Shown one piece after another: positions 2,234 to 21,785 of a stretch of DNA of 23,868 nt. Made by a program: the position numbers and the translations under genes. The stretch is from Macrostomum lignano. Its lineage: Eukaryota. The notes under the pieces are model-generated. The model worked only from the letters and a program-made list of their open reading frames with translations, was not told the DNA's origin and did not search any database. The stretch's first letter is position 1. Each line of letters begins with the position of its first letter. Location of the stretch: contig NIVC01005171.1 of assembly GCA_002269645.1 (NCBI GenBank), positions 1-23,868 on the forward strand, in the 5' to 3' direction.

Positions 2234-2324
2234 TTGGCATACACCAGCTCATCATCAATGGAGAAGTAATGTGTGCTGTTGGTGCTCTTTGGAGTTGTCT
2301 GCAGAGTAGCAAAGTAAAATCGAT
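2234..2324 (-). CDS. CDC14: CDC14 coding exon 2 ([31 protein letters not shown])
   Basis: tttttag|AT acceptor, AA|GTAAGT donor, 91 nt, phase 1 to 2. Matches CDC14 DRLYFATLR..PKST..THYFSIDEELVYEN. Confidence 0.95.
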
Positions 2325-3678
2325 CTAAAAATGTAAAATAAGATTAGCAAATCAGTTAGACAATTCAAAATACTTTCAAAATAATAAATTTCTTAAAAGT
2401 ACTCGCCTATAGACATTCAAAAGCTAAGCAAATTTATTAAAATATCTGAAATATCCGATCTTTTTGGCTATTTGAAACAAAAAATTATTGTTGAATAACT
2501 CTATTGTTTCTTTAAAGGGGCTAAGGTTACTAATATTAAACTAAAGATAACAATCATAAGCCAATATATAGTAAAGGATTTTAGTATATAGGATATTTAG
2601 ATTAGAATTTTTTATTTTAATAAAAGTTTTATTGCTATTTTCCTAATTATTAAACTATTAGATAGCAATTTATAATTCACTAGTATAAAAAATATATACA
2701 AAGCAATTAATTGCAAATGTTTATAAAAATGCACATGCTAATAACAATGTCACAGTTAATTTTTTCATTTATAATCACTATAACTATAACTATTAAGCAG
2801 CAAGCCTATTTCTTATAGATAAGATATATATAGAAAAATAGCAAATAGCTTTCATAAGACCATAAAAAGTAGATACATATTGAAATGAGTAGCTTAATGA
2901 TAAAAGTATATATTCACAATCTACATTGATTAAGGCTCTAGCTTATCTAGTTGTCTCTAATTTAAATTCTTTAAAAGCAAAATATAACTCTAATATTTTA
3001 AACCAAATTTTTATGCTAAAAGACAATTTAATAATAGACAATTTGGTAATGGATAATTCAGTGACACTCAAACAAAGATAGTTTTTTTTAATTTTTAATC
3101 ATATGTTTTAAAAGGCTTTTGTCAATTTTATATTGCCTAACTCTCATAAAACTTGGTCTCAACCAATAAATGAATATAATTATGGCTAATTTTAAAGTAT
3201 TATATTTAAAATATAATGTTCTAGGCATTGTTTATTATTAAAATGACAATTTTATTGTTTAATTTATTAATTATATAGAATAGAATAAGGCTAAAGAGTT
3301 GCAACAAGCAATATAAAAATATAAGGTACAATTTGAACTTTCATCACAATGCCATAGGGCACTAGGTTTTTTTGTGCAATAAGGATGCCAAATCATATCT
3401 TAAAATTAGACCTTGGATATTATTTTGCATTCTAGTTTGCATTTGCATTCAGATAGGGTATATTTTCCTTTTATATAATTTATTTGTCTAATATATTAAT
3501 AAATTCTATTATTACCAAATGTTTAATCCTTTAAATACTTGTCATTAGATTTATCACATACTCATATATCTTATATTACATACTATTAATATATATCTAA
3601 ATTTATAGCATAAATAACATGATATAGACTTAAGCTTAATACTTAGCCAACTAAGCCATATGGTAATTGGTTGTTTTA

Positions 3679-5184: not shown

Positions 5185-5430
5185 TCGCCCATCATAAACC
5201 CGAAATATCACAAACTCGAAATATCATAACTCCGAAAGTTCTAGCAATGTCCAACCCTATTTTGGCTTTCGGAGTTGTGATTTTTCGGGTTTATGATATT
5301 TCGGGTTTATGATGGGCGTTGCTAACACTTTCGGAGTTATGATGATATTTCGGGTTTGTGATTTTTCAGCGCTAATGAGCAATGCTATTTTGGCTTTCGG
5401 AGTTGTGATTTTTCGGGTTTATGATGGCGA
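5185..5430. repeat. Foldback/MITE-like cluster of inverted and direct repeats
   Basis: Perfect 24-bp inverted repeat 5186-5209 / 5295-5318, perfect 41-bp direct repeat 5257-5297 / 5385-5425, built from ~15-bp subunits (atttcgggtttatga). Confidence 0.8.
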
Positions 5431-5541
5431 CCCCACTCGTCCAACCCCTCCTTTCTTCTCCACTCAACCCCCTTTAGTTGAATTTACTCGTTACCCGTAT
5501 AACCGTTTGGGCCCTGCGCCCCACTTACCAACCGTTTCTTC

Positions 5542-5782
5542 GCTCGCACGGACGTATTCAGCATGCCAGTGAAGTATGAGACAGACCAGGCCTATGGGCT
5601 AAGGTCTGCGATGCTCCACGCCTGCCCCTATCTTCAGCAGGTAAAGGCTGGTGGGAGGTCTGCACCCTCTATTTGCCGCTGGCAGCCGCAGACCCCTTCC
5701 CACGTAGTTTCGCAAGCCGACCCAGGGGTACCCGTCCCCGCGAGTGTTCAAGGCAGACCCTAGGGCTGCCGGACTGACTAGG
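5542..5782 (+). ncRNA. Putative HDV-like self-cleaving ribozyme at the LINE 5' end
   Basis: P1 5542-5547/5740-5745 with G.U at position 1; P2 5721-5725/5778-5782 (one mismatch); P3 GGG 5726-5728/CCC 5736-5738; L3 TACCCGT; P1.1 A5730-T5747 and C5731-G5746; P4 5752-5770; J4/2 C5774-T-G-A. Manual fold only. Confidence 0.7.
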
Positions 5783-6057
5783 CTCCGGCGCTGGGAACCC
5801 ATCTAGTGGCTTTTGCCGAACTAGGGTATGCAGGTTTGGCTCGCCAGTCCGCAGGCCGTGGTACTGCTCAACGTACCCTCTAATGCCTAAGGTGTTCGAC
5901 CGTGCCGAGGGTTGGAAGGCCGGGGAGTAGTCCGGTCGCTAGCGGTCCCCCTCCTGGTGTCGGGCCAGCCTTGAGGGTTCTTTTGGCCTACTTCCGGTCA
6001 GGTGGAGCAGCCGGGTGGGTACCGCTCCCCTTTGAGGGTAGCCTACCAACCTTTATC

Positions 6058-6970
6058 ATGGCCTTCGAGCCGACTATGGATAATCAAGCTAATTCTAGGG
6101 ACGGGGACCCTTCTAAACCCCAACCTCAGTCCGACGGACCGGCCGGCCCTGCTGGCAGATCCCAACCGACTGATTCAACTGTGGCAAAGGGAGGACCGGC
6201 TGGCTCTGCTGGCAGATCCGACCAGAGAGCTACCAAAACCAAAGTACCCAAAGACCTGCCAGCTCTACTGGTGGATCTAAGGGAACCGCGGGCTCTGAAC
6301 CTAAAGGACCGGCCAAATCTGGCAGATCCGACGAAGCTCAGCGGGCTCGGCTTGAGCGCAAACGCGCTAAGCAACGCGCCAAAAGGCAGGCCAAGAAGGG
6401 AGCCGCGGGGGCCAAAGTGGCGGCGTCCACCATGGATGCTGAAGCGACTGGCGTCCCAAGGCAACCAGACGGGCCGGCCGGTGGAAGCTCCAGTAGTTCG
6501 CCAGGGCGCTCCCTGGAGATGCTGCTGCGGCTGCTGAGGCCGAAACCATGGCGCAACAAATAGCCACTGCCAACAAGGAGGTTCCTTCGGGAGCTACCTT
6601 TGCGGCGAAGGCCAAGGCCAAAATCCCGGGAGTGATCATTCAAGGTCGCGACCAGGACTGGACCACTGGTCAGCTTCAAAATGTGTGGAGTGCTATTGAC
6701 TCCTATCTGATTGAGCTGACTGTCGAGGAGGGAATCTCCATTGGCATTGAGCGGATGGTGCTGCGAAGCACATTCGTTCTTATTGCTCCCAGCAGTGAGG
6801 AGGACGCTCAGCAGCTGCTCCAGCGGCTGACGACGGTCTCCTTGGATGCTGACCTCGGTGGAGCCCTTTTTCTTCGCGAAGGCCAGCGTCCAAAGAGTCC
6901 CTACGTGGTTTTTGTCCCCGCAAAGAGCACCGCAGCTGGACAAACGTTATCCTGGCTGTGTCATCGACTC
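6058..6970 (+). pseudogene. LINE ORF1-like coding region, frameshifted near 6250 and near 6510
   Basis: Pro/Gly/Ser-rich repeats (GPAGSAGRS x3), a basic stretch AQRARLERKRAKQRAKRQAKK in frame 3, then a globular part TFAAKAK...PKSPYVVFVP in track ORF 6548..7285. DUF4780-like by recollection only. Confidence 0.6.
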
Positions 6971-7244
6971 GCGAATCAAAGCGTGGATCAGGACCCAGCA
7001 CCGCTCGACTTGGGCGAACTACACTACCTGCATGCAATCCAGAGGCACTGTCCCTCAGCCCTCTCACCAGCTCCGGAAGCTCGTCCTGCGCCTCTCGAGC
7101 AGCGACATCCGGGCTGCCACCATGACCCTCTCAGGTCACGGCTGCTTCTGTCAGCATCTGTCCCGCCTTTACGCGAGCCAGACTCACTTACCTCGGGCCA
7201 CACACATCTATTACTGAAGCGTGCAAACCCGAAAACTTTAATTA
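6970..7244 (+). pseudogene. LINE ORF2 C-terminal remnant, zinc-knuckle cysteines missing
   Basis: RIKAWIRTQHRSTW...LVLRLSSSDIRAATMTLSGHGCFCQHLSRL resembles the conserved W..LSR.....LTGH...HL segment that precedes the CCHC finger in R1/LOA/I-group ORF2. RLTYLG follows in a shifted frame. Confidence 0.65.
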
Positions 7245-8037
7245 GCTCATGCGCTACATGTACCTCTGGGCCCCCGCAGGGCTGAACTCTCCTTTCCAGA
7301 GAGCACCATAGCTGCTGGCGACAGTAGGGGACCTCCCTGGGCGGCGCCAACCCTTCGTCCATAGCGACGCATCGGCCGTTTAGGGATTAGCGGAATGGGC
7401 GTTCGTGCCTTCCCGCTGTGTCCCCCCGGGACAGCCCTGCAGCTACGTCAAGTAAGACCGTTTCTTCAATTCTAGCTAAATAACACTATAGCTAATTTCT
7501 ATTATTTTTCTCTCGAATTACGCTGCTTCTACAGAAGATACTAGCTGCGTGCCGAACATTTTTCCTTTCCAGGCTCAAATTATTCAATGACCTGTACAGA
7601 TTTCATCAATTGTAAGTAGAAGCACTTACCCTCTCAGATTCAGGCTATCAATCTTTGGCTTATTATAGTTCTCAGCTGTGGCCTTGACATCAGGGTGATT
7701 ACTCAAAGCCTGAAGACAGTCTCTCTGTAGATGCCTAACACTCGGGGAATTGCTGATTTTGTTATTATAGTCTGCAGGAACTTGTAGGAAGCAGGATGGA
7801 CTGTGGTGCTGCAGAAGGCATGAAGATGCGAGTATCTCACTAAAATACGCCAGATTTTCATTTTTTAAGTTCGAAAGCCTTATTAGCTGCTCAATAAGAC
7901 AATTTAGCTTTGCAAAAACAGCCTCTTCAGCTGAGGTGTCCGAATCTTTGTAGCTCTTGGCTTACAGCCTAGCTGGCATTGGAATGACATGTCTTCAAAA
8001 AGGAAGCCGAGTGTCACTCACTGTGGTGAGCGAAGCC

Positions 8038-8111
8038 AAGGACCACTAGAAGTTACCGTTGTGAGTTACAAAATCGGTCGTGAGTTACAACGGTAACTTC
8101 TAGTGGTCCTT
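8038..8111. repeat. Perfect 25-bp inverted repeat with 24-nt spacer (74-nt hairpin)
   Basis: aaggaccactagaagttaccgttgt (8038-8062) is the exact reverse complement of 8087-8111. Confidence 0.95.
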
Positions 8112-8872
8112 TAGCGAAGCAACAACCAAAGAGGCTTCCTGGAACTGCGTAACATGAAAAATCGACCTATAAAAAACGACCTATACTCTCGTATACGAGC
8201 TAAGCATAATTATCGATAGTATTTTATAATTAACAAAGCAATTTAAGCAATCAAAAGCAGGTGCATGTATACATGTAGATCTAGAAGCGGGTAAACCATC
8301 TCGATGGTTGCTTTGAGATGAGTTGGAATCAGTGACCAAATTCGGCTGGCCTTCTGTTAGCTAACCAAACCCCGGGCCAATGTTACACACACCCACGCAA
8401 GCCCACATATTCAGCTGAAGTGGCCGGCCCGTCTCCCTTCGAATCAGTTTAGGACTGTATCGACTGTTTGCCCACTGCGCCCATCCCCTCATAAGTCAAC
8501 TGATCGCGTTAGATTGGCCCATGGCCCAGGCCCAAGATGCCATTTTATAATCGGCCCTCCGTGGCCACGATTCTTCCTCTCCCACTTACCTGCCCGAGCC
8601 TCAGTCAAGGTCAGAGCCGTCTAATAATTATTGCCTGTCAGGTTCTTTGGAAATTCAATCAGCTCTCCGGTTTTAGGTCACCACCGTAAGTTGTATTTTA
8701 ACCTCTTCTGGGCCAGGGTCCAACTCTTACCTGCTGGTGCACCTTGCAATCTGGGTCAATCGAACATGCACACCAGTCATTCGAGTCGTTTAGGACTTAT
8801 GATTGTACGTGTATACAACATCTCACCTGTTTCCACCAACCCACAAAAAATCCAGAAGTGATTGCGCAAGTC

Positions 8873-9133
8873 ATGCACCCAGTCTCTGCCGTTGCCTCGT
8901 CCGCCATCCTGACTGTCAGCTACCTGGCCCTGCTGATCTGCTCCGCTGTCGCTGGCATCACCGCTGATTCGACGATCGACGCCACTCGCCGATCCTGGGA
9001 TGACGGGCCCGGCCTGTCGCTTCGGTCGGCGGACTTCGACATGACTTCCGGCTATCCGGCCATCGGCAAACGCCAGCCGCTGTCCGCTTTGCCCACTACT
9101 ACGTCGACCACGACATCGACGAGGTTGGCATGA
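8873..9133 (+). CDS. Putative secreted neuropeptide/prohormone precursor, 86 aa
   Basis: Hydrophobic N-terminus ending SAVAG, RR at residues 39-40, amidation/cleavage motif PAI-G-KR, high GC3. Candidate 5' UTR intron GTAAGT 8686 to tccAG 8855. Confidence 0.5.
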   Translation: MHPVSAVASSAILTVSYLALLICSAVAGITADSTIDATRRSWDDGPGLSLRSADFDMTSGYPAIGKRQPLSALPTTTSTTTSTRLA

Positions 9134-9806
9134 GTCCCGAAGCTGCACGCCATCAGTGAGTCGTCGGGAATATCAACAGCTTCGAAGCGCAGTGGTCCAG
9201 CTGGCCCAGCGTCTGCTTGATAATCCGCGGCGGCAGCGGCTGATGCGACAGCGACATTTGTGGCAACCGACTGAGGCTCGGGTTGTCAACCTGCTGCTGT
9301 CGCGAGGCGGTAGGCGCACTTAAGCCGGCCAACTGGGTCCAGGGGCATCTCGTCTGACTGGATGAAGAATTCATTTTATCACATCACTTTGGGTCCGCTA
9401 TTTTGCCGTCGGGCTTATTAATAGCTGGAAAGAAATCCTCAGCAAGTTTGCTACTGGCCATCCAGAGGATCCTAGCAGGTACCCATCACAAATAATGGCG
9501 GACAGGTACAAAATACTTTAGATTACGCTAGAAAAAGATCAGGGTACTAAGGGTAGTTTTGCGAGTTGTTACAAAGCACATTGGGCCGCCGATGACGAGA
9601 AGCAGACATCGCCGATTGTGCGTCTTTGTCTTGACAAACCTTCTTTGAAAATATACGTTCACAACTACAGCACGAATTACTTCAGTTCCGACTGACGCAG
9701 CTGTACTCAACCAAATGTGTTCGACACTTATTTTTACAATTGTTCTTCTGAAAGATAATTACAAAACGGAAATACTCCGCGAAACCCACAAACCCAAGGA
9801 CACGCG

Positions 9807-10964
9807 CGCCGGCTGTCCGGAAATTCGTGAGAATGTGTCAATCGAGCAAGAAAGAAGCAAGCTGTTGACATGGTGCACAGATAATTTCAATATTAGACTC
9901 ATACTAGCAATCAGCGCCCCCGTTGGGGAGCCAAATGCAGTACAAGTTTTTTAATAAACTACATGTTGCGTCTCTTTGCAATATACCTCAGCAGGCCCTT
10001 GTAAGCCTTGACATGTCAGCAATTCCCCCCACAAGCCTCGCATGGGAAAAAACGCGAGCGTAAAAAAGTGCCCGGAAAATAGCGTGCTTTACCTCATATA
10101 GAGCATTTATATATATCCCATAGACAATTGGTTGAAAAATGAAGCTCACAACTTGACTAACTGCTTGGAATAGCGGGCAATATAAGGCTCACACCATGCT
10201 CTATGCGCTCAATAACCAACGCAACGCAGTGATCAAGATTGCAAATTTTGACAGGCATTTCTTCAAAATGGAAGACTTCTAGACTTATGCCAATGCTAGA
10301 TACAGTCCTGGAATCTGCGTTATCAGTTGTCATGACGAGCTACTCAAAGTTTTTGGAGTTGCGGCACCAGTCAGTCAACGGTTTACAGATGGTACTTAGA
10401 GTTCCGTGATGAAGCAGTTCCCCTGGCCTCAGCTCCTCGGAGCTCTTGTTGAAGAGGATTCAAAAGTTTATATCAGAGACCTCGTTGAATTTTTGGAATT
10501 TAGAAGAACAACAGTGCACAAAATTTTGACGGAGAATTTGCACCTTCAAAAAGTTTCTGCTGTCTGGGTTCCGCACGCTCTCTCCGAGGAGAACAAGTTC
10601 GCAGGCTTTTTTACAACAAGGGCATGGAAAAAACTTTTTTGACAAATAAGAGGTGGAAGATGAGACATGGGTGCACCTGAACGACACTGACACAAAGTAA
10701 AAAACAGGTGCTGGCTTAGCCAAGGGGATCATCGACCACATTTAGCGACCACAAGGAAGTTCGAGAAGCTGCGTTGCAGTGGGCAAGAGGGCCTTGACGA
10801 AGATTGCTTGAAAAGAGAGGTTCAGCGACTCGTTGACCATTGCCAAGCTGTAATCAACACAAGGGGCGGGAGATCACATTACCAACTAGTGCTGTTTTCG
10901 TGTTTTCCGACAGTTCTGACTGCTTTTTTAAGATACATTCTCACGACTTTCCGGACAGCCGGAG
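9807..10964 (+). mobile_element. Degenerate, internally deleted Tc1/mariner transposon
   Basis: 28-bp TIRs 9809-9836 and 10935-10962 match 27/28; TA at 10965-10966. Transposase remnants TVYRWYLEF (HTH), WVPHAL (~10565), DETWVH (~10660) and a C-terminal QRLVDHCQAVINTRGG. Most of the catalytic domain is absent. Confidence 0.9.
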
Positions 10965-11883
10965 TAATAACAAGTTGCCTTGCAGTACTCAGTCTTCAAA
11001 AGTAGTACTGAGAGCGTTTTAGCTGCAATAGGCCATCAATTTCAACTGTCACTATCCAAGGATCGCTAGACGTCCTGGGTGCGTAAGGACGTAGCATTCG
11101 CGTTGCTCACAAATACAATAACGAGAGAGAAAACCTACATTTTAAAGCACTTAATGGACAAATTTTTATGCTATTACCCTTCTGAAATGCTATTACGGCG
11201 ATCACATGAAGCTAGCGCATACAGTACATGTATGAGTCTGGTCCAAGGTGGCTTCATCAGTTTAGCGACTAAAAAATCAAGAGAAATGCTACTGGAGACT
11301 GTCAAACGCACTGAAACGCCTGGAGACTGTCTTTTTTTCAAGATAGATTTTTCATGTCTGCGGTAAAACTCAAATTTTGATGCCATGCATTCGACAAAAG
11401 TTCTATAAAGAACATTCAGTACTTTCACTTTACCAGCTTCCAGACGATGTTTTTATAAACTACTCGTAATTCAATTCAACATATTTTAACTGAAATTCAA
11501 CCTTCAACCTGCAGGTGCAGCGGTAACTTTCATTGGCCCTTGTCGCTGGCACCGATGCTATTGAAATCATGGTTCACTTTGACACACTTTGTGTATAAAA
11601 AGTACGCAATCTGTGTGCTTGAAAGTGCGACAGGTGATTTTTTTGCAATAAATTTTCAATCAGAAAGAGTAAAAGTGAACGGCATTTGCTATCAGCTAGG
11701 AACAGACCCAAGACCCTGGACGCGACTTGATCAAATCACTGAGCAGCTGCCAAATAAGAAATGAAATGTGAAATCTCTTATTTCAGCCCCAGGCAGACTT
11801 TCGGCTCTGCTCTATTAATCCCGTCAAGATGAGCTGAGCTGGGACTGTTACCTGCACTCTTATTCCTATTTTCAGGCTTATTC

Positions 11884-14620
11884 CTGTCTCATAGCTTAGT
11901 AATGATGAGGCTTAGCTGTCTCATAGCTTAGTCATGATGAGGCTTAGCTGTCTCATAGCTTAGTAATGATGAGGCTTAGCTGTCTCATAGCTTAGTCATG
12001 ATGAGGCTTAGCTGTCTCATAGCTTAGTAATGATGAGAATTAGCTGTCTCATAGCTTAGTAATGATGAGGCTTAGCTGTCTCATAGCTTAGTAATGATGA
12101 GGCTTAGCTGTCTCATAGCTTAGTAATGATGAGGCTTAGCTGTCTCATAGCTTAGTAATGATGAGAATTAGCTGTCTCATAGCTTAGTAATGATGAGGCT
12201 TAGCTGTCTCATAGCTTAGTAATGATGAGGCTTAGCTGTCTCATAGCTTAGTAATGATGATAATGATGAGGCTTAGCTGTCTCATAGCTTAGTAATGATG
12301 ATAATGATGAGGCTTAGCTGTCTCATAGCTTAGTAATGATGAGGCTTAGCTGTCTCATAGCTTAGTAATGATGAGGCTTAGCTGTCTCATAGCTTAGTAA
12401 TGATGAGGCTTAGCTGTCTCATAGCTTAGTAATGATGAGGCTTAGCTGTCTCATAGCTTAGTAATGATGAGGCTTAGCTGTCTCATAGCTTAGTAATGAT
12501 GAGAATTAGCTGTCTCATAGCTTAGTAATGATGAGGCTTAGCTGTCTCATAGCTTAGTAATGATGAGAATTAGCTGTCTCATAGCTTAGTAATGATGAGA
12601 ATTAGCTGTCTCATAGCTTAGTAATGATGAGGCTTAGCTGTCTCATAGCTTAGTAATGATGAGAATTAGCTGTCTCATAGCTTAGTAATGATGAGAATTA
12701 GCTGTCTCATAGCTTAGTAATGATGAGAATTAGCTGTCTCATAGCTTAGTAATGATGAGGCTGTGTCTCATAGCTTAGTAATGATGAGAATTAGCTGTCT
12801 CATAGCTTAGTAATGATGAGGCTTAGCTGTCTCATAGCTTAGTAATGATGAGAATTAGCTGTCTCATAGCTTAGTAATGATGAGAATTAGCTGTCTCATA
12901 GCTTAGTAATGATGAGGCTTAGCTGTCTCATAGCTTAGTAATGATGAGAATTAGCTGTCTCATAGCTTAGTAATGATGAGAATTAGCTGTCTCATAGCTT
13001 AGTAATGATGAGAATTAGCTGTCTCATAGCTTAGTAATGATGAGAATTAGCTGTCTCATAGCTTAGTAATGATGAGGCTTAGCTGTCTCATAGCTTAGTA
13101 ATGATGAGAATTAGCTGTCTCATAGCTTAGTAATGATGAGGCTTAGCTGTCTCATAGCTTAGTAATGATGAGGCTTAGCTGTCTCATAGCTTAGTAATGA
13201 TGAGAATTAGCTGTCTCATAGCTTAGTAATGATGAGAATTAGCTGTCTCATAGCTTAGTAATGATGAGAATTAGCTGTCTCATAGCTTAGTAATGATGAG
13301 AATTAGCTGTCTCATAGCTTAGTAATGATGAGAATTAGCTGTCTCATAGCTTAGTAATGATGAGAATTAGCTGTCTCATAGCTTAGTAATGATGAGAATT
13401 AGCTGTCTCATAGCTTAGTAATGATGAGGCTTGCTGTCTCATAGCTTAGTAATGATGAGAATTAGCTGTCTCATAGCTTAGTAATGATGAGAATTAGCTG
13501 TCTCATAGCTTAGTAATGATGAGAATTAGCTGTCTCATAGCTTAGTAATGATGAGAATTAGCTGTCTCATAGCTTAGTAATGATGAGAATTAGCTGTCTC
13601 ATAGCTTAGTAATGATGAGATTAGCTGTCTCATAGCTTAGTAATGATGAGGCTTAGCTGTCTCATAGCTTAGTAATGATGAGGCTTAGCTGTCTCATAGC
13701 TTAGTAATGATGAGGCTTAGCTGTCTCATAGCTTAGTAATGATGAGAATTAGCTGTCTCATAGCTTAGTAATGATGAGGCTTAGCTGTCTCATAGCTTAG
13801 TAATGATGAGAATTAGCTGTCTCATAGCTTAGTAATGATGAGAATTAGCTGTCTCATAGCTTAGTAATGATGAGGCTTAGCTGTCTCATAGCTTAGTAAT
13901 GATGAGAATTAGCTGTCTCATAGCTTAGTAATGATGAGGCTTAGCTGTCTCATAGCTTAGTAATGATGAGAATTAGCTGTCTCATAGCTTAGTAATGATG
14001 AGAATTAGCTGTCTCATAGCTTAGTAATGATGAGAATTAGCTGTCTCATAGCTTAGTAATGATGAGAATTAGCTGTCTCATAGCTTAGTAATGATGAGGC
14101 TTAGCTGTCTCATAGCTTAGTAATGATGAGGCTTAGCTGTCTCATAGCTTAGTAATGATGAGGCTTAGCTGTCTCATAGCTTAGTAATGATGAGAATTAG
14201 CTGTCTCATAGCTTAGTAATGATGAGAATTAGCTGTCTCATAGCTTAGTAATGATGAGAATTAGCTGTCTCATAGCTTAGTAATGATGAGAATTAGCTGT
14301 CTCATAGCTTAGTAATGATGAGAATTAGCTGTCTCATAGCTTAGTAATGATGAGAATTAGCTGTCTCATAGCTTAGTAATGATGAGAATTAGCTGTCTCA
14401 TAGCTTAGTAATGATGAGAATTAGCTGTCTCATAGCTTAGTAATGATGAGAATTAGCTGTCTCATAGCTTAGTAATGATGAGAATTAGCTGTCTCATAGC
14501 TTAGTAATGTGAGAATTAGCTGTCTCATAGCTTAGTAATGATGAGTTCTGTCTCATAGCTTAGTAATGATGAGAATTAGCTGTCTCATAGCTTAGTAATG
14601 ATGAGAATTAGCTGTCTCAT
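11884..14620. repeat. 32-bp satellite, about 85 copies (ttagctgtctcatagcttagtaatgatgag[gc/aa])
   Basis: Period 32 read directly; two main variants; stops in all frames; no spacers. Confidence 0.98.
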
Positions 14621-14672
14621 GCAACAGTAATATCTTTAGTGTCCATCTTTTTATTTTCTCACACTGCTTTAC

Positions 14673-14890
14673 AGGAAAATTCCAGTTGAGTTTAAAGCAG
14701 TCTGAGTCCATTTTTGTTGAAAATCACTCTAATATTATTGGCCACTTACTCTGGCCAATCAGCAATCTTCCGTGAAGTTACCTGAAGATTTAAGATCACT
14801 CCAAAGCACTGAATAAGACAGCGTGTGTGTGTGGACGACTTTAAAATTGATTTTCTAATGTCAGTCAAAAGCCTAATCAACACAGTGAAG
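14673..14890 (+). other. Possible non-coding (5' UTR) exon upstream of the GPCR
   Basis: Strong acceptor tttttattttctcacactgctttacag| and GAAG|gtagg donor-like site; all frames contain stops. Splice signals only. Confidence 0.3.
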
Positions 14891-14999
14891 GTAGGCTGCA
14901 TTGCTTCATTTAAATTTGTATTTGTATTGAGTACTCTACTTTTGGCATCCAGCTAATTACTCAAGCCATTCTTATATACAATCATTATGTCACCATTCT

Positions 15000-15457
15000 A
15001 CTCAATGTCAGCCATCAATCCACTCATTCTCAGACATATCAATCTACTCATTCTCAGGCATCAATCTACTCATTCTCAGACATCAATCTACTCATTCTCA
15101 GGCATCAATCTGCTCATTCTCAGACATATCAATCTACTCATTCTCAGGCATCAATCTACTCATTCTCAGACATCAATCTACTCATTCTCAGGCATCAATC
15201 TGCTCATTCTCAGACATATCAATCTACTCATTCACAGGCATCTATCTACTCATTCTCAGGCATCAATCTACTCATTCTCAGACATCAATCTACTCATTCT
15301 CGGAAATCAATCTACTCATTCTCGGAAATCAATCTACTCATTCTCAGTCATTAATCTACTCATTCTCAGACATCAATCTACTCATTCTCGGAAATCAATC
15401 TACTCATTCTCGGAAATCAATCTACTCATTCTCAGTCATTAATCTACTCATTCTCAG
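15000..15457. repeat. ~22-bp minisatellite, about 20 copies (catcaatctactcattctcag[g/a])
   Basis: Tandem units with 22/24-nt variants; ends exactly at the CAG preceding GPCR coding sequence. Confidence 0.93.
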
Positions 15458-15520
15458 ACATTCCACCCCTCTTCCTCCGGTCCCCGCCAGCCTGATGGCA
15501 ACCTCAGCCAGCACCAGCTG

Positions 15521-15815
15521 ATGCAGCTGCTGCACCAGAAGCTGTTCGGCCCACGGCAGCTCAGCAGCTCAGATATTTTTCTACTAGCTGTGTACTCGGC
15601 CATCGTCCTGTTGTCGGTCGGTGGCAACGGCCTGTTCCTGTTTCTGAGCTTCAAATATAGCGGCCTTCGACGCCACACCTCCTACATCATGATGAGTCTT
15701 GCTTGCTCAAACCTGCTCGTTGCCTGCACCTGCCTGCCAGTGTCAGCCGTGAAAGTTTTTTATAACACCTGGAAACTAGGCGGCACTGCCTGTCGATTAG
15801 TCAGTTTCATTGAAG
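15521..15815 (+). CDS. Class A (rhodopsin-like) peptide-type GPCR, exon encoding TM1 to early TM3; the open frame extends upstream to the acceptor at 15458
   Basis: TM1 GN, TM2 SLACSNLL..CLP, ECL1 WKLGGTAC; donor GAAG|GTGAA at 15816, phase 1. Confidence 0.9.
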
Positions 15816-15904
15816 GTGAATACTGTTTTAACCTCCAGGTTTGGACCATATTGACCTTAAGCTAAAGGATTACTGACCTAAGCCATGAAAAAGCCCTAAT
15901 AAAC

Positions 15905-16575
15905 TTGAGTTTTAGTGTCATAGTGACCTTGAGTTTTTTGGCCACAATGACCTTGAGTTTTGATTCCAAAATCACCTTGCATTTTTGGGCCAAAATGACC
16001 TTAAGTATTGGGGCCAAAATGACTTTGAGTTTTGGGGCCAAAATGGCCTTGAGTTTTATGGGCAAAAAGACCTTGAGTTTTGGTTCCAAAATGACCTTAT
16101 TGATTTATGGGGCCAAAATGACAATGAGAATTGGGGCCAAACTGACCTTGAGTTTCGGGGCCAAACTGACCTTGAGTGTTGGGGCCAAAATGACCTTGAT
16201 TTATGGGGCCAAACTGACCTTGAGTGTTGGGGCCAAAATGACCTTATTGATTTATGGGGCCAAAATGACCATGAGAATTGGGGCCAAACTGACCTTGAGT
16301 TTCGGGGCCAAACTGACCTTGAGTGTTGGGGCCAAAATGACCTTATTGATTTATGGGGCCAAAATGACCATGAGAATTGGGGCCAAACTGACCTTGAGTT
16401 TCGTGGCCAAACTGACCTTGAGTATTGGGGCCAAACTGACCTTGAGTGTTGGGGCCAAAATGACCTTGATTTATGGGGCCAAACTGACCTTGAGTTTCGG
16501 GGCCAAACTGACCTTGAATGTTGGGGCCAAACTGACCTTGAGTTTCGGGGCCAAAATTATTCTAAGTCTTTTGGC
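15905..16575. repeat. 24-bp (some 27-bp) minisatellite, about 27 copies (ggggccaaa[a/c]tgaccttgagt...) in the GPCR intron
   Basis: Repeating GAK(L/M)TL(S/I) octapeptide pattern in track ORF 15905..16651. Confidence 0.93.
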
Positions 16576-17217
16576 TCTAATAGCCTTGAGATTTAGGGTC
16601 ATAGTGACCACTGAGCTACAATCACGGGAACATAGTGGCCTAGAGTCCTGAGAACATTATGATTTGATAGAAGGGTGAGTAAGACGAGGTTAACTTGCAA
16701 GATGTCGGTATTGACGCATGCGGTAGAGCTGGTGCAAGGAAATGAATGGCTGAATAATGAATGGACCAGACATACAGAAATTATGGCAACTTGTAGGACA
16801 AAAAACTTTATAATATAGGGGTGTTGAGTCAAAGGGCAGAAAGAGAGGGATAGAGCGATCTGGCATATTGAATTCTCAGTGAGCAGGTGAGAGCTCAACC
16901 AGTAGTAGCAGCAACATCCCACGCGCTAAAACACTCTTAATTAGCGCTTTTCAATCAGCAATTTGCTTTGTTCTGAGCTGCAGAATGCTCTCGTAAAAAT
17001 TCGAAAATCCCTTCTGTAGTAGCAGTCCGAACTAATAACTGGGGTTCGAGAGCGCGGCCTCGGGTCATTTTGAAGAAGCTAGTAGTCCTTACTGAGCTTC
17101 TTTGTAAAGATTTACACGACTGGCGTCATTTCCATGAAAGTCACGTGCTTTGTTAATTGTCAGTTCTAGCAATAAAATACACAGTGTTAACCATTTTTAA
17201 ATGACCCCTTCTCTGCT

Positions 17218-17246
17218 GACAGTGTGCGTGATTCTGCATCCTGACA

Positions 17247-17298
<52 letters not shown>

Positions 17299-17432
17299 GT
17301 GTTTGTGTGTTTGTGTGTGTGTGTGTGTGTGTGTTTGTGTGATTCTGCATCCTGACACAGTGTGTGCTTGTGTGATTCTGCATCCTGACACAGTGTGTGC
17401 TTGTGTGATTCTGCATCCTGACACAGTGTGTG

Positions 17433-17475
<43 letters not shown>

Positions 17476-17933
17476 TTGTGTGATTCTGCATCCTGACACA
17501 GTGTGTGTTTGTGTGATTCTGCATCCTGACACAGTGTGTGCTTGTGTGATTCTGCATCCTGACACAGTGTGTGCTTGTGTGATTCTGCATCCTGACACAG
17601 TGTGTGCTTGTGTGATTCTGCATCCTGACACAGTGTGTGCTTGTGTGATTCTGCATCCTGACACAGTGTGTGCTTGTGTGATTCTGCATCCTGACACAGT
17701 GTGTGTGTGATTCTGCATCCTGACACAGTGTGTGTTTGTGTGTGCGATTCTGCATCCTGACACAGTGTGTGTTTGTGTGATTCTGCATCCTGACACAGTG
17801 TGTATGTGTGTGTGTGTGTGTGTGTGATTCTGCATCCTGACACAGTGTGTGTGTGATTCTACATCCTGACACAGTGTGTGTTTGTGTGATTCTGCATCCT
17901 GACACAGTGTGTGTGTAATTCTACATCCTGACA

Positions 17934-17964
<31 letters not shown>

Positions 17965-18630
17965 ATTCTGCATCCTGACACAGTGTGTGTGTGATTCTAC
18001 ATCCTGACACAGTGTGTGTGTGTGTGTGTGTGTGTGATTCTGCATCCTGACACAGTGTGTGTGTAATTCTACATCCTGACACAGTGTGTGTGTGATTCTA
18101 CATCCTGACACTGTGTGTGTGTGTGTGATTCTGCATCCTGACACAGTGTGTGTGTGATTCTACATCCTGACACAGTGTGTTTGTGTGATTCTGCATCCTG
18201 ACAGTGTGTGTGTGTGATTCTACATCCTGACACAGTGTGTGTGTGATTCTACATCCTGACACAGTGTGTGTGTGATTCTACATCCTGACACAGTGTGTTT
18301 GTGTGATTCTGCATCCTGACAGTGTGTGTGTGATTCTACATCCTGACACAGTGTGTGTGTGTGTGTGTGTGTGTGTGATTCTACATCCTGACACAGTGTG
18401 TGTGTGTGTGTGTGTGATTCTGCATCCTGACACAGTGTGTGTGTGTGTGATTCTACATCCTGACACAGTGTGTGTGTGTGTGTGTGTGTGTGATTCTGCA
18501 TCCTGACACTGTGTGTGTGATTCTGCATCCTGACACAGTGTGTGTTTGTGTGATTCTGCATCCTGACACAGTGTGTGTTTGTGTGATTCTGCATCCTGAC
18601 ACAGTGTGTGTGTGATTCTGCATCCTGACA

Positions 18631-18661
<31 letters not shown>

Positions 18662-19108
18662 ATTCTGCATCCTGACACAGTGTGTGTGTGTGATTCTACA
18701 TCCTGACACAGTGTGTGTGTGTGTGTGCGTGTGTGATTCTGCATCCTGACACTGTGTGTGTGATTCTGCATCCTGACACAGTGTGTGTGTGTGATTCTAC
18801 ATCCTGACACAGTGTGTGTGTGTGTGTGTGTGTGATTCTGCATCCTGACACTGTGTGTGTGATTCTGCATCCTGACACAGTGTGTGCTTGTGTGATTCTG
18901 CATCCTGACACAGTGTGTGTTTGTGTGATTCTGCATCCTGACACAGTGTGTGTTTGTGTGATTCTGCATCCTGACACAGTGTGTGCTTGTGTGATTCTGC
19001 ATCCTGACACAGTGTGTGTGTGATTCTGCATCCTGACACAGTGTGTGTTTGTGTGTGTGATTCTGCATCCTGACACAGTGTGTGTTTGTGTGATTCTGCA
19101 TCCTGACA

Positions 19109-19150
<42 letters not shown>

Positions 19151-19653
19151 TTCTGCATCCTGACACAGTGTGTGTGATTCTACATCCTGACACAGTGTGT
19201 GATTCTACATCCTGACACTGTGTGTGTGTGTGTGTGATTCTGCATCCTGACACAGTGTGTGTGTGATTCTACATCCTGACACAGTGTGTGTTTGTGTGAT
19301 TCTGCATCCTGACAGTGTGTGTGTGATTCTACATCCTGACACAGTGTGTGTGTGATTCTACATCCTGACACAGTGTGTGTGTGATTCTACATCCTGACAC
19401 AGTGTGTGTGTGTGTGATTCTGCATCCTGACACAGTGTGTGTGTGATTCTACATCCTGACACAGTGTGTGTTTGTGTGATTCTGCATCCTGACACAGTGT
19501 GTGCGTGATTCTACATCCTGACACTGTGTGTGTGTGTGTGTGTGTGATTCTGCATCCTGACACAGTGTGTGTGTGTGATTCTACATCCTGACACAGTGTG
19601 TGTTTGTGTGATTCTGCATCCTGACAGTGTGTGTGTGATTCTACATCCTGACA

Positions 19654-19703
<50 letters not shown>

Positions 19704-19834
19704 TTCTGCATCCTGACACAGTGTGTGTGTGATTCTACATCCTGACACAGTGTGTGTGTGATTCTACATCCTGACACAGTGTGTTTGTGTGATTCTGCAT
19801 CCTGACAGTGTGTGTGTGATTCTACATCCTGACA

Positions 19835-19870
<36 letters not shown>

Positions 19871-20190
19871 TTCTACATCCTGACACAGTGTGTGTGTGTG
19901 TGTGATTCTGCATCCTGACACAGTGTGTGTGTGTGATTCTACATCCTGACACAGTGTGTGTGATTCTGCATCCTGACACAGTGTGTGTGTGTGATTCTAC
20001 ATCCTGACACTGTGTGTGTGATTCTGCATCCTGACACAGTGTGTGTGATTCTGCATCCTGACAAAGTGTGTGTGTGTGTGTGTGTGTGTGATTCTGCATC
20101 CTGACACAGTGTGAATCTCGGTTGGGATTCTGCACCCTGACTTTTTGGGATTCTGCACCCTGACTGTACAGGATTCTGCATCTTGACAAT
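17218..20190. repeat. Compound satellite: constant core gattct[g/a]catcctgaca[ca] separated by variable (GT)n, roughly 90 units, in the GPCR intron
   Basis: Visible directly; copy number is an estimate. Explains all track ORFs between 17153 and 20268. Confidence 0.97.
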
Positions 20191-20940
20191 GCGTGGGAGA
20201 TTCGACTTCTTGAAGTTTGGGATATTCCTCATCCCCACAGCTCCGCTTAGCGCATATTTTTTGTGCATATTTTAACAGCCTTAACTATTGGCCGCAAGAG
20301 AATTGAAGAGAAGATCGAAGCTCCCTAAGGCAGGGGTGAGTGCTTCGAGATCCCTTCTTCCGCTGTTAGAAAAGGGGAAACTATTCCCTATCAGACAGAA
20401 ACGCGGAGGAAGGAAATCCCGCTGATTGGGGATGCGGCGGTGTCGGGTTGGAGCGATATAAGCAGCCAGGGGTCAGGCTGATCAAATTGGAAGTTCATCA
20501 TAGATAAGAAGTAATTTCTCGGTTCAGCGGCAGAGGGAGAGATCTGAGCTGACGGCTGAAGACCGTCCGCAGCTCAGGAATTCCGTCTCAGGGCATATTG
20601 AGCTGCAGGTTGAGGAGTAGGGGGAGAGCAAAGTTCGTGTCTGAGTGGTCAGACAGTGTTTGCTTCCCTTGAGAATGGAAGCGATTAGCTGCTCGACTTT
20701 CTTATATCATATCAAAAACTTCCCAGGCAATATGGCAATATGGCAACTCGTACAGTCCAATTGACATGCTTTATTACTACTTGCTATTAAGTAGCTTGAA
20801 TTCTCAAAACTGTGCACAATTTACCTTAGAGATTGGCCCTTGTCCATCTAATAGACATCTGCTTAGAGTCATGGACTACTTAAAAAAATCCTTGGCCAAA
20901 ATCACGGAGCAAACATAATCCCCCCCAACTGACTCCGCAG

Positions 20941-21785
20941 GCCTGGCCCTGTGCGTTAACAGTTTCTCCCTGGCGTCCATTGCAATTTTGCGCGCCCGTC
21001 AGAGCGCCACTACAGCGGCGCCGCCGCCGGACCAGGTGAGCAACAACTCCAACCTGCGCCGGGTGGTGGCAGCCACGTGGCTTGGCGCCCTGCTGGTCTC
21101 CACGCCAGCCCTGTTCGCCTTCAGTCTGCAGCCGGTGAACATGCCGGTAGGAGGTGACGGCCGCGGCAACTCGTCCCGCAGCCAAGACGTTCACTACGTG
21201 TGCTCGGAGGATCGCAGCAACCCGGTGGGGCAGAAGGCCTACTCAGCCTACTTCCTAGTGCTGCTGTTCCTGTCTCCCTGCGTGGTGCTGGCTTTCTCAT
21301 ACGGCGTCACCGCTCGATTCTTGTCCAGACAGTTCGGCCGCTTGACCGGCCGCCGGCTGCAGGCGGCGACGTCTCTCGGACAAGCGACCGCCGCGCTGGA
21401 GGAACAGCCAGAAGAGCTCCAGGAGCAGCAGCCACGCCTGGCCCTGACCAACCAGACTTCCGTAGCATCTGGCGGGCCGCTGAATCGGCAGCACCGGCAG
21501 ACGCGCCGGCTGCACCGTCGGACGGTGAAAACTCTCGCCGTACTAGTGGCTGTCTTCATCGTGTGCTGGTTCCCCAAAGATCTGATCATTCTGTTGCAGG
21601 ATTTTGTGCTGGAAAACCGTGGCGTGGACGCCGTGAGCCCCCTGATAGAGATTTACCCGTACAGTCAGGCCCTGATCTACCTGCACAGCGCTCTCTGCCC
21701 GTTCCTGTACTGGTGCCTCAGCCGTGTGTTTCAGCACTACGTCAGAAAGGCATTCTCCAGGCAGCAGCCAGAGCAGCGCCAATAG
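20941..21785 (+). CDS. Same GPCR, exon encoding TM3 to the C-terminus (spliced product 379 aa from Met 15521)
   Basis: Branch point ctgac and ccgcag| acceptor at 20940. G|GC splice restores the exact C3.25 to R3.50 spacing. TM4 W..P, ECL2 Cys, TM5 P/Y, TM6 CWFP, TM7 CPFLY. Confidence 0.92.

Follow-up and report, generated by a model that had tools for sequence, protein, structure and literature searches.

A predicted fossil HDV-like ribozyme at the 5′ end of a Macrostomum lignano LINE

We analysed a stretch of 23,868 nucleotides from the flatworm Macrostomum lignano (contig NIVC01005171.1, forward strand), referred to below as the window. At positions 5542 to 5789, the window carries a double pseudoknot of the HDV type, which opens on the first base of a decayed LINE and is conserved in two diverged relatives. 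We conclude, with a probability of roughly 0.78, that this segment is the fossil of a 5′-terminal HDV-like self-cleaving ribozyme from an RNase-H-bearing, AP-endonuclease-type Macrostomum LINE family. The structure is real and conserved. It is another instance of a known LINE trick, not a new kind of RNA. A sequence-only reading of this DNA had predicted an HDV-like ribozyme at the LINE's first base; its bases and coordinates were all correct on direct reading, and the prediction is now strengthened by the fold and compensatory changes in two relatives, one of which starts at the homologous G.

The element's boundaries were read directly. An 11-bp target-site duplication, ACCGTTTCTTC, flanks a LINE of 1,915 bp (5542-7456), with its left copy at 5531-5541 and its right copy at 7457-7467. 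Because the two copies match exactly, G5542 is the first base of the insertion, as had been proposed, and P1 of the ribozyme begins at this base, adjoining the duplication. Between its ends the element holds a 5′UTR, remnants of ORF1 and ORF2, and a 3′UTR; poly(A) is absent from 5542-7456. The coding part is reduced to frameshifted ORF1 remnants (about 6070-6945) and a C-terminal ORF2 remnant in another frame (about 6950-7250). The former are 93 to 98% identical to M. lignano UniRef gene models, which run on into ORF2. This copy is dead: it has a deletion from the middle of ORF1 to the C-terminus of ORF2, frameshifts, a mismatch in P2 and a bulge in P4. Pfam returned no match for ORF1 or for the ORF2 remnant. 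A word-indexed protein search with ORF1 found one M. lignano model only, and the transposon part of that model retrieved no sequence, itself included, in a search that misses close relatives.

Two diverged relatives were recovered, L001 from a Logan contig and L004 from a JGI metagenome contig. L001 is a full LINE with an ORF2 that carries Exo_endo_phos, RVT_1 and RNase_H domains. Since endonuclease, reverse transcriptase and RNase H domains are present in the ORF2 of relatives, we classify the window element as a LINE. Both of its ends are homologous to L001: at the 3′ side, window bases 7035-7147 and 7382-7418 match the end of ORF2 and the 3′UTR, and the terminus CTGCAGCTACGTCAAGTAAG matches the L001 element end. 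The very first base of the L001 contig is the one that aligns with G5542, though about 520 bp of 3′ flank are present, which places the family 5′ end at G1. Three further relatives (L002, L003 and L006) lie on contigs that end short of the ribozyme. Metagenome scans with the exact core pattern and with an ORF1 protein query had no match, nor did viral-contig scans by pattern and by ORF1 alignment. A scan of prokaryote genomes gave a single match, in a Dehalococcoidia MAG; it falls in an apparent ribosomal-protein (L2-type) coding region and was rejected as chance.

All strands of an HDV-like ribozyme occur in order in the window (P1, J1/2, P2, P3, L3, P3′, P1′, J1/4, P4, J4/2, P2′), and they form a nested double pseudoknot with the same strand order in L001 and L004. 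The 5′ strand of P1, GCUCGC (5542-5547), pairs with GCGAGU (5740-5745) through a G.U wobble, G5542.T5745, followed by five Watson-Crick pairs, and the MFE fold, computed without constraints, contains it. Cleavage is predicted between C5541 and G5542. Above P1, A5548 faces C5739. This A.C had tentatively been put down to decay after insertion, but it is conserved: L001 has the same A x C, and human CPEB3 closes P1 with C.A (bioRxiv 10.1101/2022.09.22.508989). J1/2 is a peripheral domain of about 168 nt (5548-5715). P2 has a core of CCCAG (5721-5725) with CUAGG (5778-5782) and one mismatch, C5723 x A5780. This mismatch is decay, as the sequence-only reading had suggested: A5780 is G in both relatives, which restores the C-G pair. 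Beyond an unpaired A5720 on one strand and an unpaired CUC on the other, GCCG (5716-5719) and CGGC (5786-5789) make a possible P2 extension, so that the P2 strands would span 5716-5725 and 5778-5789. The 3′ edge of the ribozyme is therefore more likely at 5789 than at 5784, where it had been placed.

The core between these helices is compact. P3 is a 3-bp helix (GGG 5726-5728, CCC 5736-5738) around the 7-nt L3 UACCCGU (5729-5735), which retains U1 and G6 of the reverse wobble and C3 used in P1.1. The two-pair P1.1 mini-helix joins L3 to the G and U of J1/4 (5746-5747), directly after P1′, through C5731-G5746 and A5730-U5747. P4 (5748-5773) has a core of GGCAG (5752-5756) with CTGCC (5766-5770), inner pairs of 5758-5759 (C,C) with 5764-5765 (G,G), a bulged A5757 and possible outer pairs T5748-A5773 and C5749-G5772. 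J4/2 is CUGA (5774-5777), with C5774 as the proposed catalytic base. It fits the published descriptor motif C-N-R-A, whose adenosines dock into P3. Unusually, C5774 is set off from the P4 core by three bases that are unpaired or only weakly paired.

The same double pseudoknot is kept in L001 and L004. In an alignment of three sequences only (the window and these two relatives), double-sided changes occur in 6 of the 21 pairs and are located in P1, P1.1 and P2. Paired cells reach 96.4%, compared with 30 to 44% in slid registers, which show no double changes at all, and column shuffles reach the observed score in 4 of 500 trials. The core was aligned without P4, as P4 misalignment spoiled RNAalifold on the automatic pairwise alignment. 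Positions 3 and 4 of P1 covary with L001, and the P2 core covaries with both relatives; the P2 extension and P3 are invariant. In L3, the U, C, G and U at positions 1, 5, 6 and 7 do not vary among the three. P4 is a perfect 8-bp stem in L004; in L001 its place is taken by an unrelated 9-bp GC stem. A C lies four bases before the 3′ strand of P2 in all three.

In P1.1, L001 has U-A plus C-G, with both pairs changed on both sides. In L004, whose L3 is UUCUCGU, P1.1 consists of C-G plus U x U. The sequence-only reading held that the window keeps P1.1 as A-U plus C-G by a compensated change; the two pairs are present, but the compensation is not two-sided, and because in L004 that U is opposed by another U, as in CPEB3, the A-U pair was created by a U-to-A change. 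An A at L3 position 2 is known from one moth species (PMC3774820). The point that an A-U pair in P1.1 would escape descriptors has precedent: over-strict early descriptors and a variable P1.1 have already been published (PMC4035085).

The long J1/2 is structured. Its fold consists of three or four separate hairpins, and we found no single helix closing it; both hairpins named in the earlier reading appear in the MFE fold. The hairpin at 5573-5615 is 87% identical to L001 33-78, with two compensatory pairs, and is the best-conserved stretch of the 5′UTR, ahead of the catalytic core. The long hairpin at about 5654-5707 is kept in all three sequences with several compensatory pairs, in an imperfect alignment. 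A J1/2 of about 170 nt, which the earlier reading put in its heading, is not unusual: in R2 ribozymes the distance between P1 and P1′ ranges from 23 to more than 700 nt (PMC3774820). Other M. lignano copies also bear on the core. The gene models P0007 and P0005 translate through it and fix A5730, C5731, G5734, T5745 and G5746; in P0007, a second M. lignano copy, T5745 and G5746 are fixed by a Cys codon, TGY. Their J4/2 codon is CGA or AGA, implying C-(C/A)-G-A. One other M. lignano copy implies an A5743-to-T change in P1′, which speaks against the ribozyme reading.

By analogy with characterised HDV-like ribozymes, the active element would have worked as follows. Transcription of the LINE would be driven from upstream DNA, or the LINE would be co-transcribed with a host gene. 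The RNA would fold with P1, P1.1 and P4 stacked beside P2 and P3, and the structured J1/2 of about 170 nt would hold P1 and P2 together. Cytosine 5774, the putative catalytic base, and Mg2+ would then cut the chain directly 5′ of G5542. The retrotransposon RNA would thus start at G1 with a 5′-OH, and a full-length cDNA copy would start at G1 beside the target-site duplication, as the window copy does. Any role of the structure in translation would be putative.

The two relatives depart from the window at the cut site and in J4/2. The cut-site pair is G.U in the window and G-C in L001; L004 has C at the 3′ position of this pair, and its P1 5′ strand is off the contig. The three bases after the conserved C differ (UGA in the window, GUG and UGC in the relatives): where the window reads C5774-U-G-A, L004 has CGUG and L001 CUGC, with no adenosine in either. 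Both the G.U wobble and the J4/2 adenosine have been described as important for the activity of HDV and CPEB3 (bioRxiv 10.1101/2022.09.22.508989). It is conceivable, though we would not bet on it, that the window, L001 and L004 represent a working HDV-like branch that tolerates G-C at the cut site and does without J4/2 adenosines, the missing contacts coming from the purine-rich trio that precedes the catalytic C or from the strongly conserved J1/2 hairpin at 5573-5615. In that case, the minimal consensus now accepted is drawn too tightly, and many LINE 5′ ends go unnoticed.

These same departures speak for the strongest rival explanation, that the 5′UTR contains a conserved HDV-shaped pseudoknot that does not cleave, now or ever, and has another role, such as binding protein, cap-independent translation of ORF1 or forming part of an internal promoter, with G1 as the transcription start. 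Conservation peaks in the J1/2 hairpin and not in the core, a further conserved 5′UTR block lies at 5843-5970, and in L1Tc the same 77 nt serve as promoter and ribozyme (PMC3383444). Against this, the conserved positions are precisely the HDV active-site set: U1 and G6 of L3, P1.1, the 3-bp P3 and the C before P2′. In two independent families, P1 also opens on the first base to be transcribed or retained, something that a promoter does not need. In the studies cited here, all tested HDV-like folds of this kind at LINE 5′ ends have cleaved, except for degenerate copies, the horseshoe crab R2 and a very weak silkmoth R2, the latter two unexplained (PMC3774820, PMC3185411). On balance, we regard a non-cleaving pseudoknot as improbable.

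P1 is present in the MFE fold, and the nested part of the ribozyme comes to -85 with P2 adding about -7, a sum not far from the -98 kcal/mol of the MFE. The full-length MFE fold puts other pairings in place of P3, and a competing hairpin of 5768-5773 with 5784-5789 can sequester C5774. The fold energy is unexceptional for the composition (z = -1.0). Rfam HDV, CPEB3 and drz models, which are narrow and not built for a J1/2 of 170 nt, had no match in the whole window, 5400-5900, 5705-5800, L001 or L004, either at the gathering score or at E<=10.

A further scan used a descriptor modelled on CPEB3-like geometry and written after the candidate had been seen. On both strands of the window, the 5542 site is its sole match. 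It matched 7 times in 150 block-shuffled windows and 5 times among 1,500 shuffled versions of the element. When the 5′ strand of P1 was held to the first six bases of the element, matches occurred in 4 of 300,000 composition-matched shuffles. Because the descriptor postdates the candidate, all these figures call for a correction of perhaps one or two orders of magnitude, after which they remain small. In relaxed form, the descriptor finds one additional match in the window (2322-2680) and a single site in the whole 6.5-kb L001 contig, starting at base 1; with this start fixed, 242 of 150,000 L001 shuffles match.

A chance resemblance in a GC-rich 5′UTR, structurally meaningless, could draw on the many helices that such sequence gives, the ordinary fold energy, the post hoc descriptor with its relaxed match elsewhere and the silence of the Rfam models. 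The rarity of matches among shuffles with a fixed start argues against it, as does a match that begins exactly at the boundary defined by the duplication. That two diverged relatives have this fold at the homologous place, with compensation at six pairs and at none in slid registers, brings this explanation close to refutation, and we give it very little weight. Weaker still, and rejected, is the proposal that catalysis falls to C5770, which ends the P4 3′ strand and precedes GGA, with the P2 3′ strand starting at 5774: the window's C5770-G-G-A and the C139-G-A-A of L004 do fit C-N-R-A, like the C-G-A-A of HDV and CPEB3, and would supply the adenosines missing after the C5774 equivalent in relatives, but P2 could not then form beside P3 in L004 (A94 x C143) or L001 (A175 x C228), the covarying P2 pairs begin, in each of the three sequences, four bases past C5774, and the equivalent L001 C223 is buried in a perfect 9-bp stem.

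A self-cleaving ribozyme at the LINE's 5′ end is thus the preferred reading, and it adds a free-living flatworm and a dispersed, RNase-H-bearing LINE family to the elements with predicted HDV-like trimming of the 5′ end. It also supplies a natural case of covariation in the two-pair P1.1 helix, where variation is rarely seen. With a long J1/2, such sites escape the curated RNA models, a point relevant to the annotation of LINE boundaries in invertebrate genomes. What is known of how HDV-like ribozymes or LINEs work is unchanged.

Of the known systems, CPEB3 is nearly identical to the window in core geometry and shares with it a P1 of six pairs with G.U first and an A/C mismatch closing it, a P3 of 3 bp, a 7-nt L3 of the form U-N-C-N-C-G-U and a J1/4 G-U directly after P1′. 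CPEB3 is a mammalian intronic ribozyme, whereas the window sequence sits at the 5′ end of a retrotransposon and is missed by the Rfam CPEB3 model. CPEB3 has essentially no J1/2, compared with about 170 structured nucleotides here, and its J4/2 is CGAA, where the window has CUGA. The window has three extra bases between P4 and the catalytic C. The P1.1 of CPEB3, C-G plus U.U, is that of L004 (bioRxiv 10.1101/2022.09.22.508989).

R2, R4, Dong, Baggins and L1Tc all carry HDV-like ribozymes at their 5′ ends (PMC3774820). Those of R2, R4 and Dong process the element 5′ end, as predicted here, and have a variable P4; their P1 has 6 to 7 bp with mismatches at the top, P2 is often mismatched, the long and variable J1/2 measures 216 to 498 nt in silkmoths and the gap between P1 and P1′ reaches more than 700 nt in honeybee (PMC3774820). 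R2 differs in its restriction-like endonuclease, its insertion into 28S rDNA and its frequent cleavage inside upstream rRNA; the window LINE belongs to a family with an AP-endonuclease and RNase H, dispersed insertions with target-site duplication and a predicted cut at the element's own first base. L1Tc/ingi (L1TcRz) and Baggins1 resemble it in having HDV-like ribozymes in the first bases of AP-endonuclease-type LINEs with cleavage at +1, a variable P1.1 of one or two pairs, and internally deleted non-autonomous derivatives that retain the ribozyme (PMC3185411, PMC4035085, PMC3774820). L1TcRz is compact, at 77 nt, and is also an internal promoter, whereas the window RNA, from a flatworm host, runs to about 250 nt and includes a J1/2 that is both large and conserved. 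Structured J1/2 domains are known to activate large ribozymes, with up to about 1,000-fold faster cleavage in the drz-Agam-2 type (PMC4908430). In that type, with its P1.2 peripheral domain, a structured J1/2 joins the far ends of P1 and P2 as in the window, which differs in that no single helix was found to close J1/2.

Between 5542 and 7456 the window carries a GC-rich block in AT-rich surroundings, flanked by perfect 11-bp direct repeats, ACCGTTTCTTC (5531-5541 and 7457-7467), with no further copy of the block within the window. This block is a dead LINE with an internal deletion. It starts with a 5'UTR, runs through frameshifted pieces of ORF1 (about 6070-6945), jumps from there into another frame and the C-terminal part of ORF2 (about 6950-7250), and closes with a 3'UTR without poly(A). 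In intact M. lignano models, the deletion point is followed by the remaining ORF1 and then by an ORF2. M. lignano gene models in UniRef match the ORF at 6548-7285 with 92-98% identity. The window also holds exons of a rhodopsin-type GPCR, and the M. lignano model A0A1I8IKR7 (P0003), which represents this very locus, is a chimeric gene prediction with the transposon included: it joins LINE ORF fragments (6002-6945) to 8744-9133, to 9156-9323 and to the downstream GPCR exons at 15521-15865 and 20988-21785. Minisatellite arrays lie at 74-745, 11750-14900, 14969-15461, 15893-16611 and 17200-20200, with periods of 32, 32, 22, 24 and 33 bp, respectively; the last has interspersed (TG)n runs and a strong strand composition skew. 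Immediately before the LINE insertion site, at 5186-5430, inverted repeats are densely nested within one another; their arms reach 53 nt with 92% complementarity, and the cluster may be a palindromic repeat or MITE-like element. A near-perfect palindrome occupies 8038-8111 (32-nt arms, 91% complementary, 10-nt spacer). Two 31-nt inverted repeats (9809-9839 and 10932-10962), 94% complementary and 1.1 kb apart, may be a small DNA transposon remnant; the ORF between them, 10406-10642, had no Pfam match.

The LINE opens with a candidate HDV-like ribozyme, 5542-5789, and we found every pairing listed in the sequence-only reading. P1 pairs 5542-5547 with 5740-5745, beginning with a G.U followed by five Watson-Crick pairs, and at its top A5548 stands opposite C5739. 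P3, GGG/CCC, closes the 7-nt loop L3, UACCCGU. P1.1 consists of C5731-G5746 and A5730-U5747, and P4 pairs 5752-5756 with 5766-5770. The joining strand J4/2 is C5774 followed by UGA, and P2 (5721-5725/5778-5782) has a single mismatch, C5723 against A5780. To this we added a possible four-pair P2 extension (5716-5719/5786-5789) and a possible two-pair outer P4 (5748-5749/5772-5773). An alternative J4/2, C5770-G-G-A, was rejected because it would keep P2 from forming beside P3 in both of the relatives described below.

A word-indexed protein search returned no relatives with DNA and missed M. lignano proteins 93-98% identical to the query. Queried with part of one protein, it did not return that protein, while exhaustive HMMER succeeded; its negatives should not be trusted for such sequence. 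Relatives came from the exhaustive HMMER search with ORF1, which gave the M. lignano models and Logan and JGI contigs with distant ORF1 relatives (30-36% identity). L001 (Logan ERR14788467, 6,492 bp) is a complete element with an ORF1 of 525 aa and an ORF2 of 1,232 aa carrying Exo_endo_phos, RVT_1 and RNase_H domains. Base 1 of the contig aligns with G5542, in agreement with the proposal that the family's 5' end lies there. The 3' terminus of the L001 element aligns with the last bases of the window element, and about 520 bp of unrelated flank follow. A start at G1 despite the 3' flank is compatible with a read-through transcript whose 5' end was cut, or with an assembly that broke off at the repeat boundary. 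L004 (JGI 3300038379) begins within J1/2 and includes the entire 3' domain. The contigs L002, L003 and L006 end before the ribozyme region, and none of the metagenome, viral and prokaryote collections scanned in addition yielded a usable relative.

We aligned the cores of the window, L004 and L001 by hand, with a script check; motifs follow in that order. The 5' strand of P1 is GCTCGC in the window and GCCTGC in L001, and lies outside the L004 contig; P1' is GCGAGT, GCGAGC and GCAGGC, preceded by a spacer C in the first two and by none in L001. P2 pairs CCCAG, CCCAAA and CTCAGA with CTAGG, TTTGGG and TCTGAG, so that in the window it is one pair shorter than in the relatives, each strand missing one base. 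The P2 extension is GCCG and CGGC in all three, with one unpaired base (A, A, C) after the 5' strand and three (CTC, CAA, CAA) before the 3' strand. P3 is likewise GGG and CCC throughout, closing TACCCGT, TTCTCGT and TCTCCGT. J1/4 is GT, GT and AG. P4 has 5 bp, an A bulge and 2 bp in the window, 8 bp in L004, and 9 bp in L001, where a different stem occupies the same place; compared with L004, the bulged A5757 appears to mark the loss of one base. After GGA, GAA or TAG comes the proposed catalytic base, C in all three, and then TGA, GTG or TGC. In the relatives the cleavage-site pair is G-C and the three bases following the conserved C include no A; the window copy is closer to the textbook active site than they are.

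In the covariation alignment of the three cores, with P4 left out and the P1 5' strand covered by two sequences only, 6 of 21 pairs differed at both positions (P1, P2 and P1.1 contributed two each, which is all of P1.1), and 96.4% of cells were paired. When the 3' partners were slid by 1-3 columns, 30-44% were paired with zero double changes, and the observed covariation score was reached by 4 of 500 column shuffles. P3 and the P2 extension are invariant and therefore uninformative either way. In P1.1, both pairs are swapped in L001. U5747 had been read as a compensating change, which it was not: U faces U at this place in L004, and the A-U pair arose by U-to-A in L3. The A.C at P1 position 7, earlier suspected of being decay, is not decay; it is kept in L001 and parallels CPEB3. 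Decay does account for the P2 mismatch, since both relatives have C-G there.

Other M. lignano copies could be read through gene models P0007 and P0005, which translate through their ribozyme cores. In them a Thr codon establishes A5730 and C5731, an Arg codon G5734, and a Cys codon T5745 and G5746; the L3 A and the G.U wobble are therefore features of the M. lignano family and not accidents of the window copy. The J4/2 codon, TGA in the window, is Arg (CGA or AGA) in these copies, so the family J4/2 is C-(C/A)-G-A. One Glu-to-Val difference in the gene-model copies implies T in place of A5743 in P1'; the P1 5' strand is outside the translated stretch. P0010 belongs to another LINE family of M. 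lignano (ORF1 31% identical) and starts with ...KSTQGYPSP..., which matches the translation of CAGGGGTACCCGTCC and faintly hints that the same core may be shared more widely.

We then considered chance. Our descriptor asked for six P1 base pairs opening with G.U, three in P3, the L3 pattern T-N-C-N-N-G-N, a G following P1', four or more base pairs in P4, the motif C-N-R-A, five base pairs in P2, one of which could be a mismatch, and J1/2 of at most 250 nt. The candidate was its sole site on both window strands. Block-wise dinucleotide shuffles of the window gave 7 matches in 150, and shuffles of the element gave 5 in 1,500; when the first six bases of the element were imposed as the P1 5' strand, 300,000 shuffles gave 4 matches. 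Because the descriptor was written after the candidate was seen, the real chance probability is higher, but this inflation does not amount to the four or five orders of magnitude that chance would need. A relaxed descriptor matched L001 only once, from base 1 onward; with that start fixed, 242 of 150,000 shuffles matched. Thermodynamics alone is unpersuasive. The minimum free energy (MFE) fold has P1 and, as proposed, the local hairpins of J1/2; P3 is replaced, a rival hairpin pairs 5768-5773 with 5784-5789, and the energy is unexceptional given the base composition (z = -1.0). The ribozyme fold, counted as its nested part plus P2, lies a few kcal/mol from the MFE.

Within J1/2, the hairpin at 5573-5615 (L001 33-78) is the most conserved 5'UTR stretch, with 87% identity to L001 and two compensatory pairs. 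That identity is found between families with only about 35% ORF1 protein identity. Such conservation suggests a function of its own, e.g., as a peripheral ribozyme domain, promoter or protein-binding site. A long hairpin near 5654-5707 is likewise retained and shows several compensatory pairs, on a poor alignment. A second conserved 5'UTR block, 5843-5970 (L004 296-422, L002 5-59), lies between the ribozyme and ORF1, is common to the relatives, and may be a translation-initiation or packaging element.

The mechanism is most likely that of R2, R4, Dong, Baggins and L1Tc, in which 5'-end processing has been shown (PMC3774820, PMC3185411). The element would be transcribed together with upstream sequence, its 5' 250 nt would fold, and the J4/2 cytosine with Mg2+ would cut 5' of G1. 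The released RNA would be the template for target-primed reverse transcription, so that full-length copies would start at G1 beside the target-site duplication. A start at G1 is seen at 5541/5542 and in L001. The large structured J1/2 may be a peripheral domain joining P1 and P2 (compare PMC4908430), or may have its own role as promoter or in protein binding or translation. In the window copy, C5541-G5746 pairing would extend P1 and could compete with P1.1, a context effect described for L1Tc (PMC3185411).

Much of this architecture is already known: J1/2 of 216-498 nt in silkmoths, P1 to P1' distances from 23 to >700 nt, mismatches at the top of a 6-7-bp P1 and within P2, variable P4, and one moth R2 with A at L3 position 2 (PMC3774820), as well as P1.1 helices that vary in composition and the finding that the early descriptor was overly strict (PMC4035085). 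We found no literature linking Macrostomum to HDV-like ribozymes and, apart from R2 of planaria, none on such ribozymes in flatworm LINEs. Minor points of interest are the natural P1.1 covariation, the relatives without the wobble and the J4/2 adenosine, and invisibility to Rfam. The window core is very close to that of the CPEB3 ribozyme. The two share a six-pair P1 with an A/C mismatch at its closing end, the L3 pattern U-N-C-N-C-G-U and a J1/4 of G-U. CPEB3 is reported to have a P1.1 of one G-C pair plus U-U and, in the human ribozyme, a P1 closed by a C.A pair (bioRxiv 10.1101/2022.09.22.508989).
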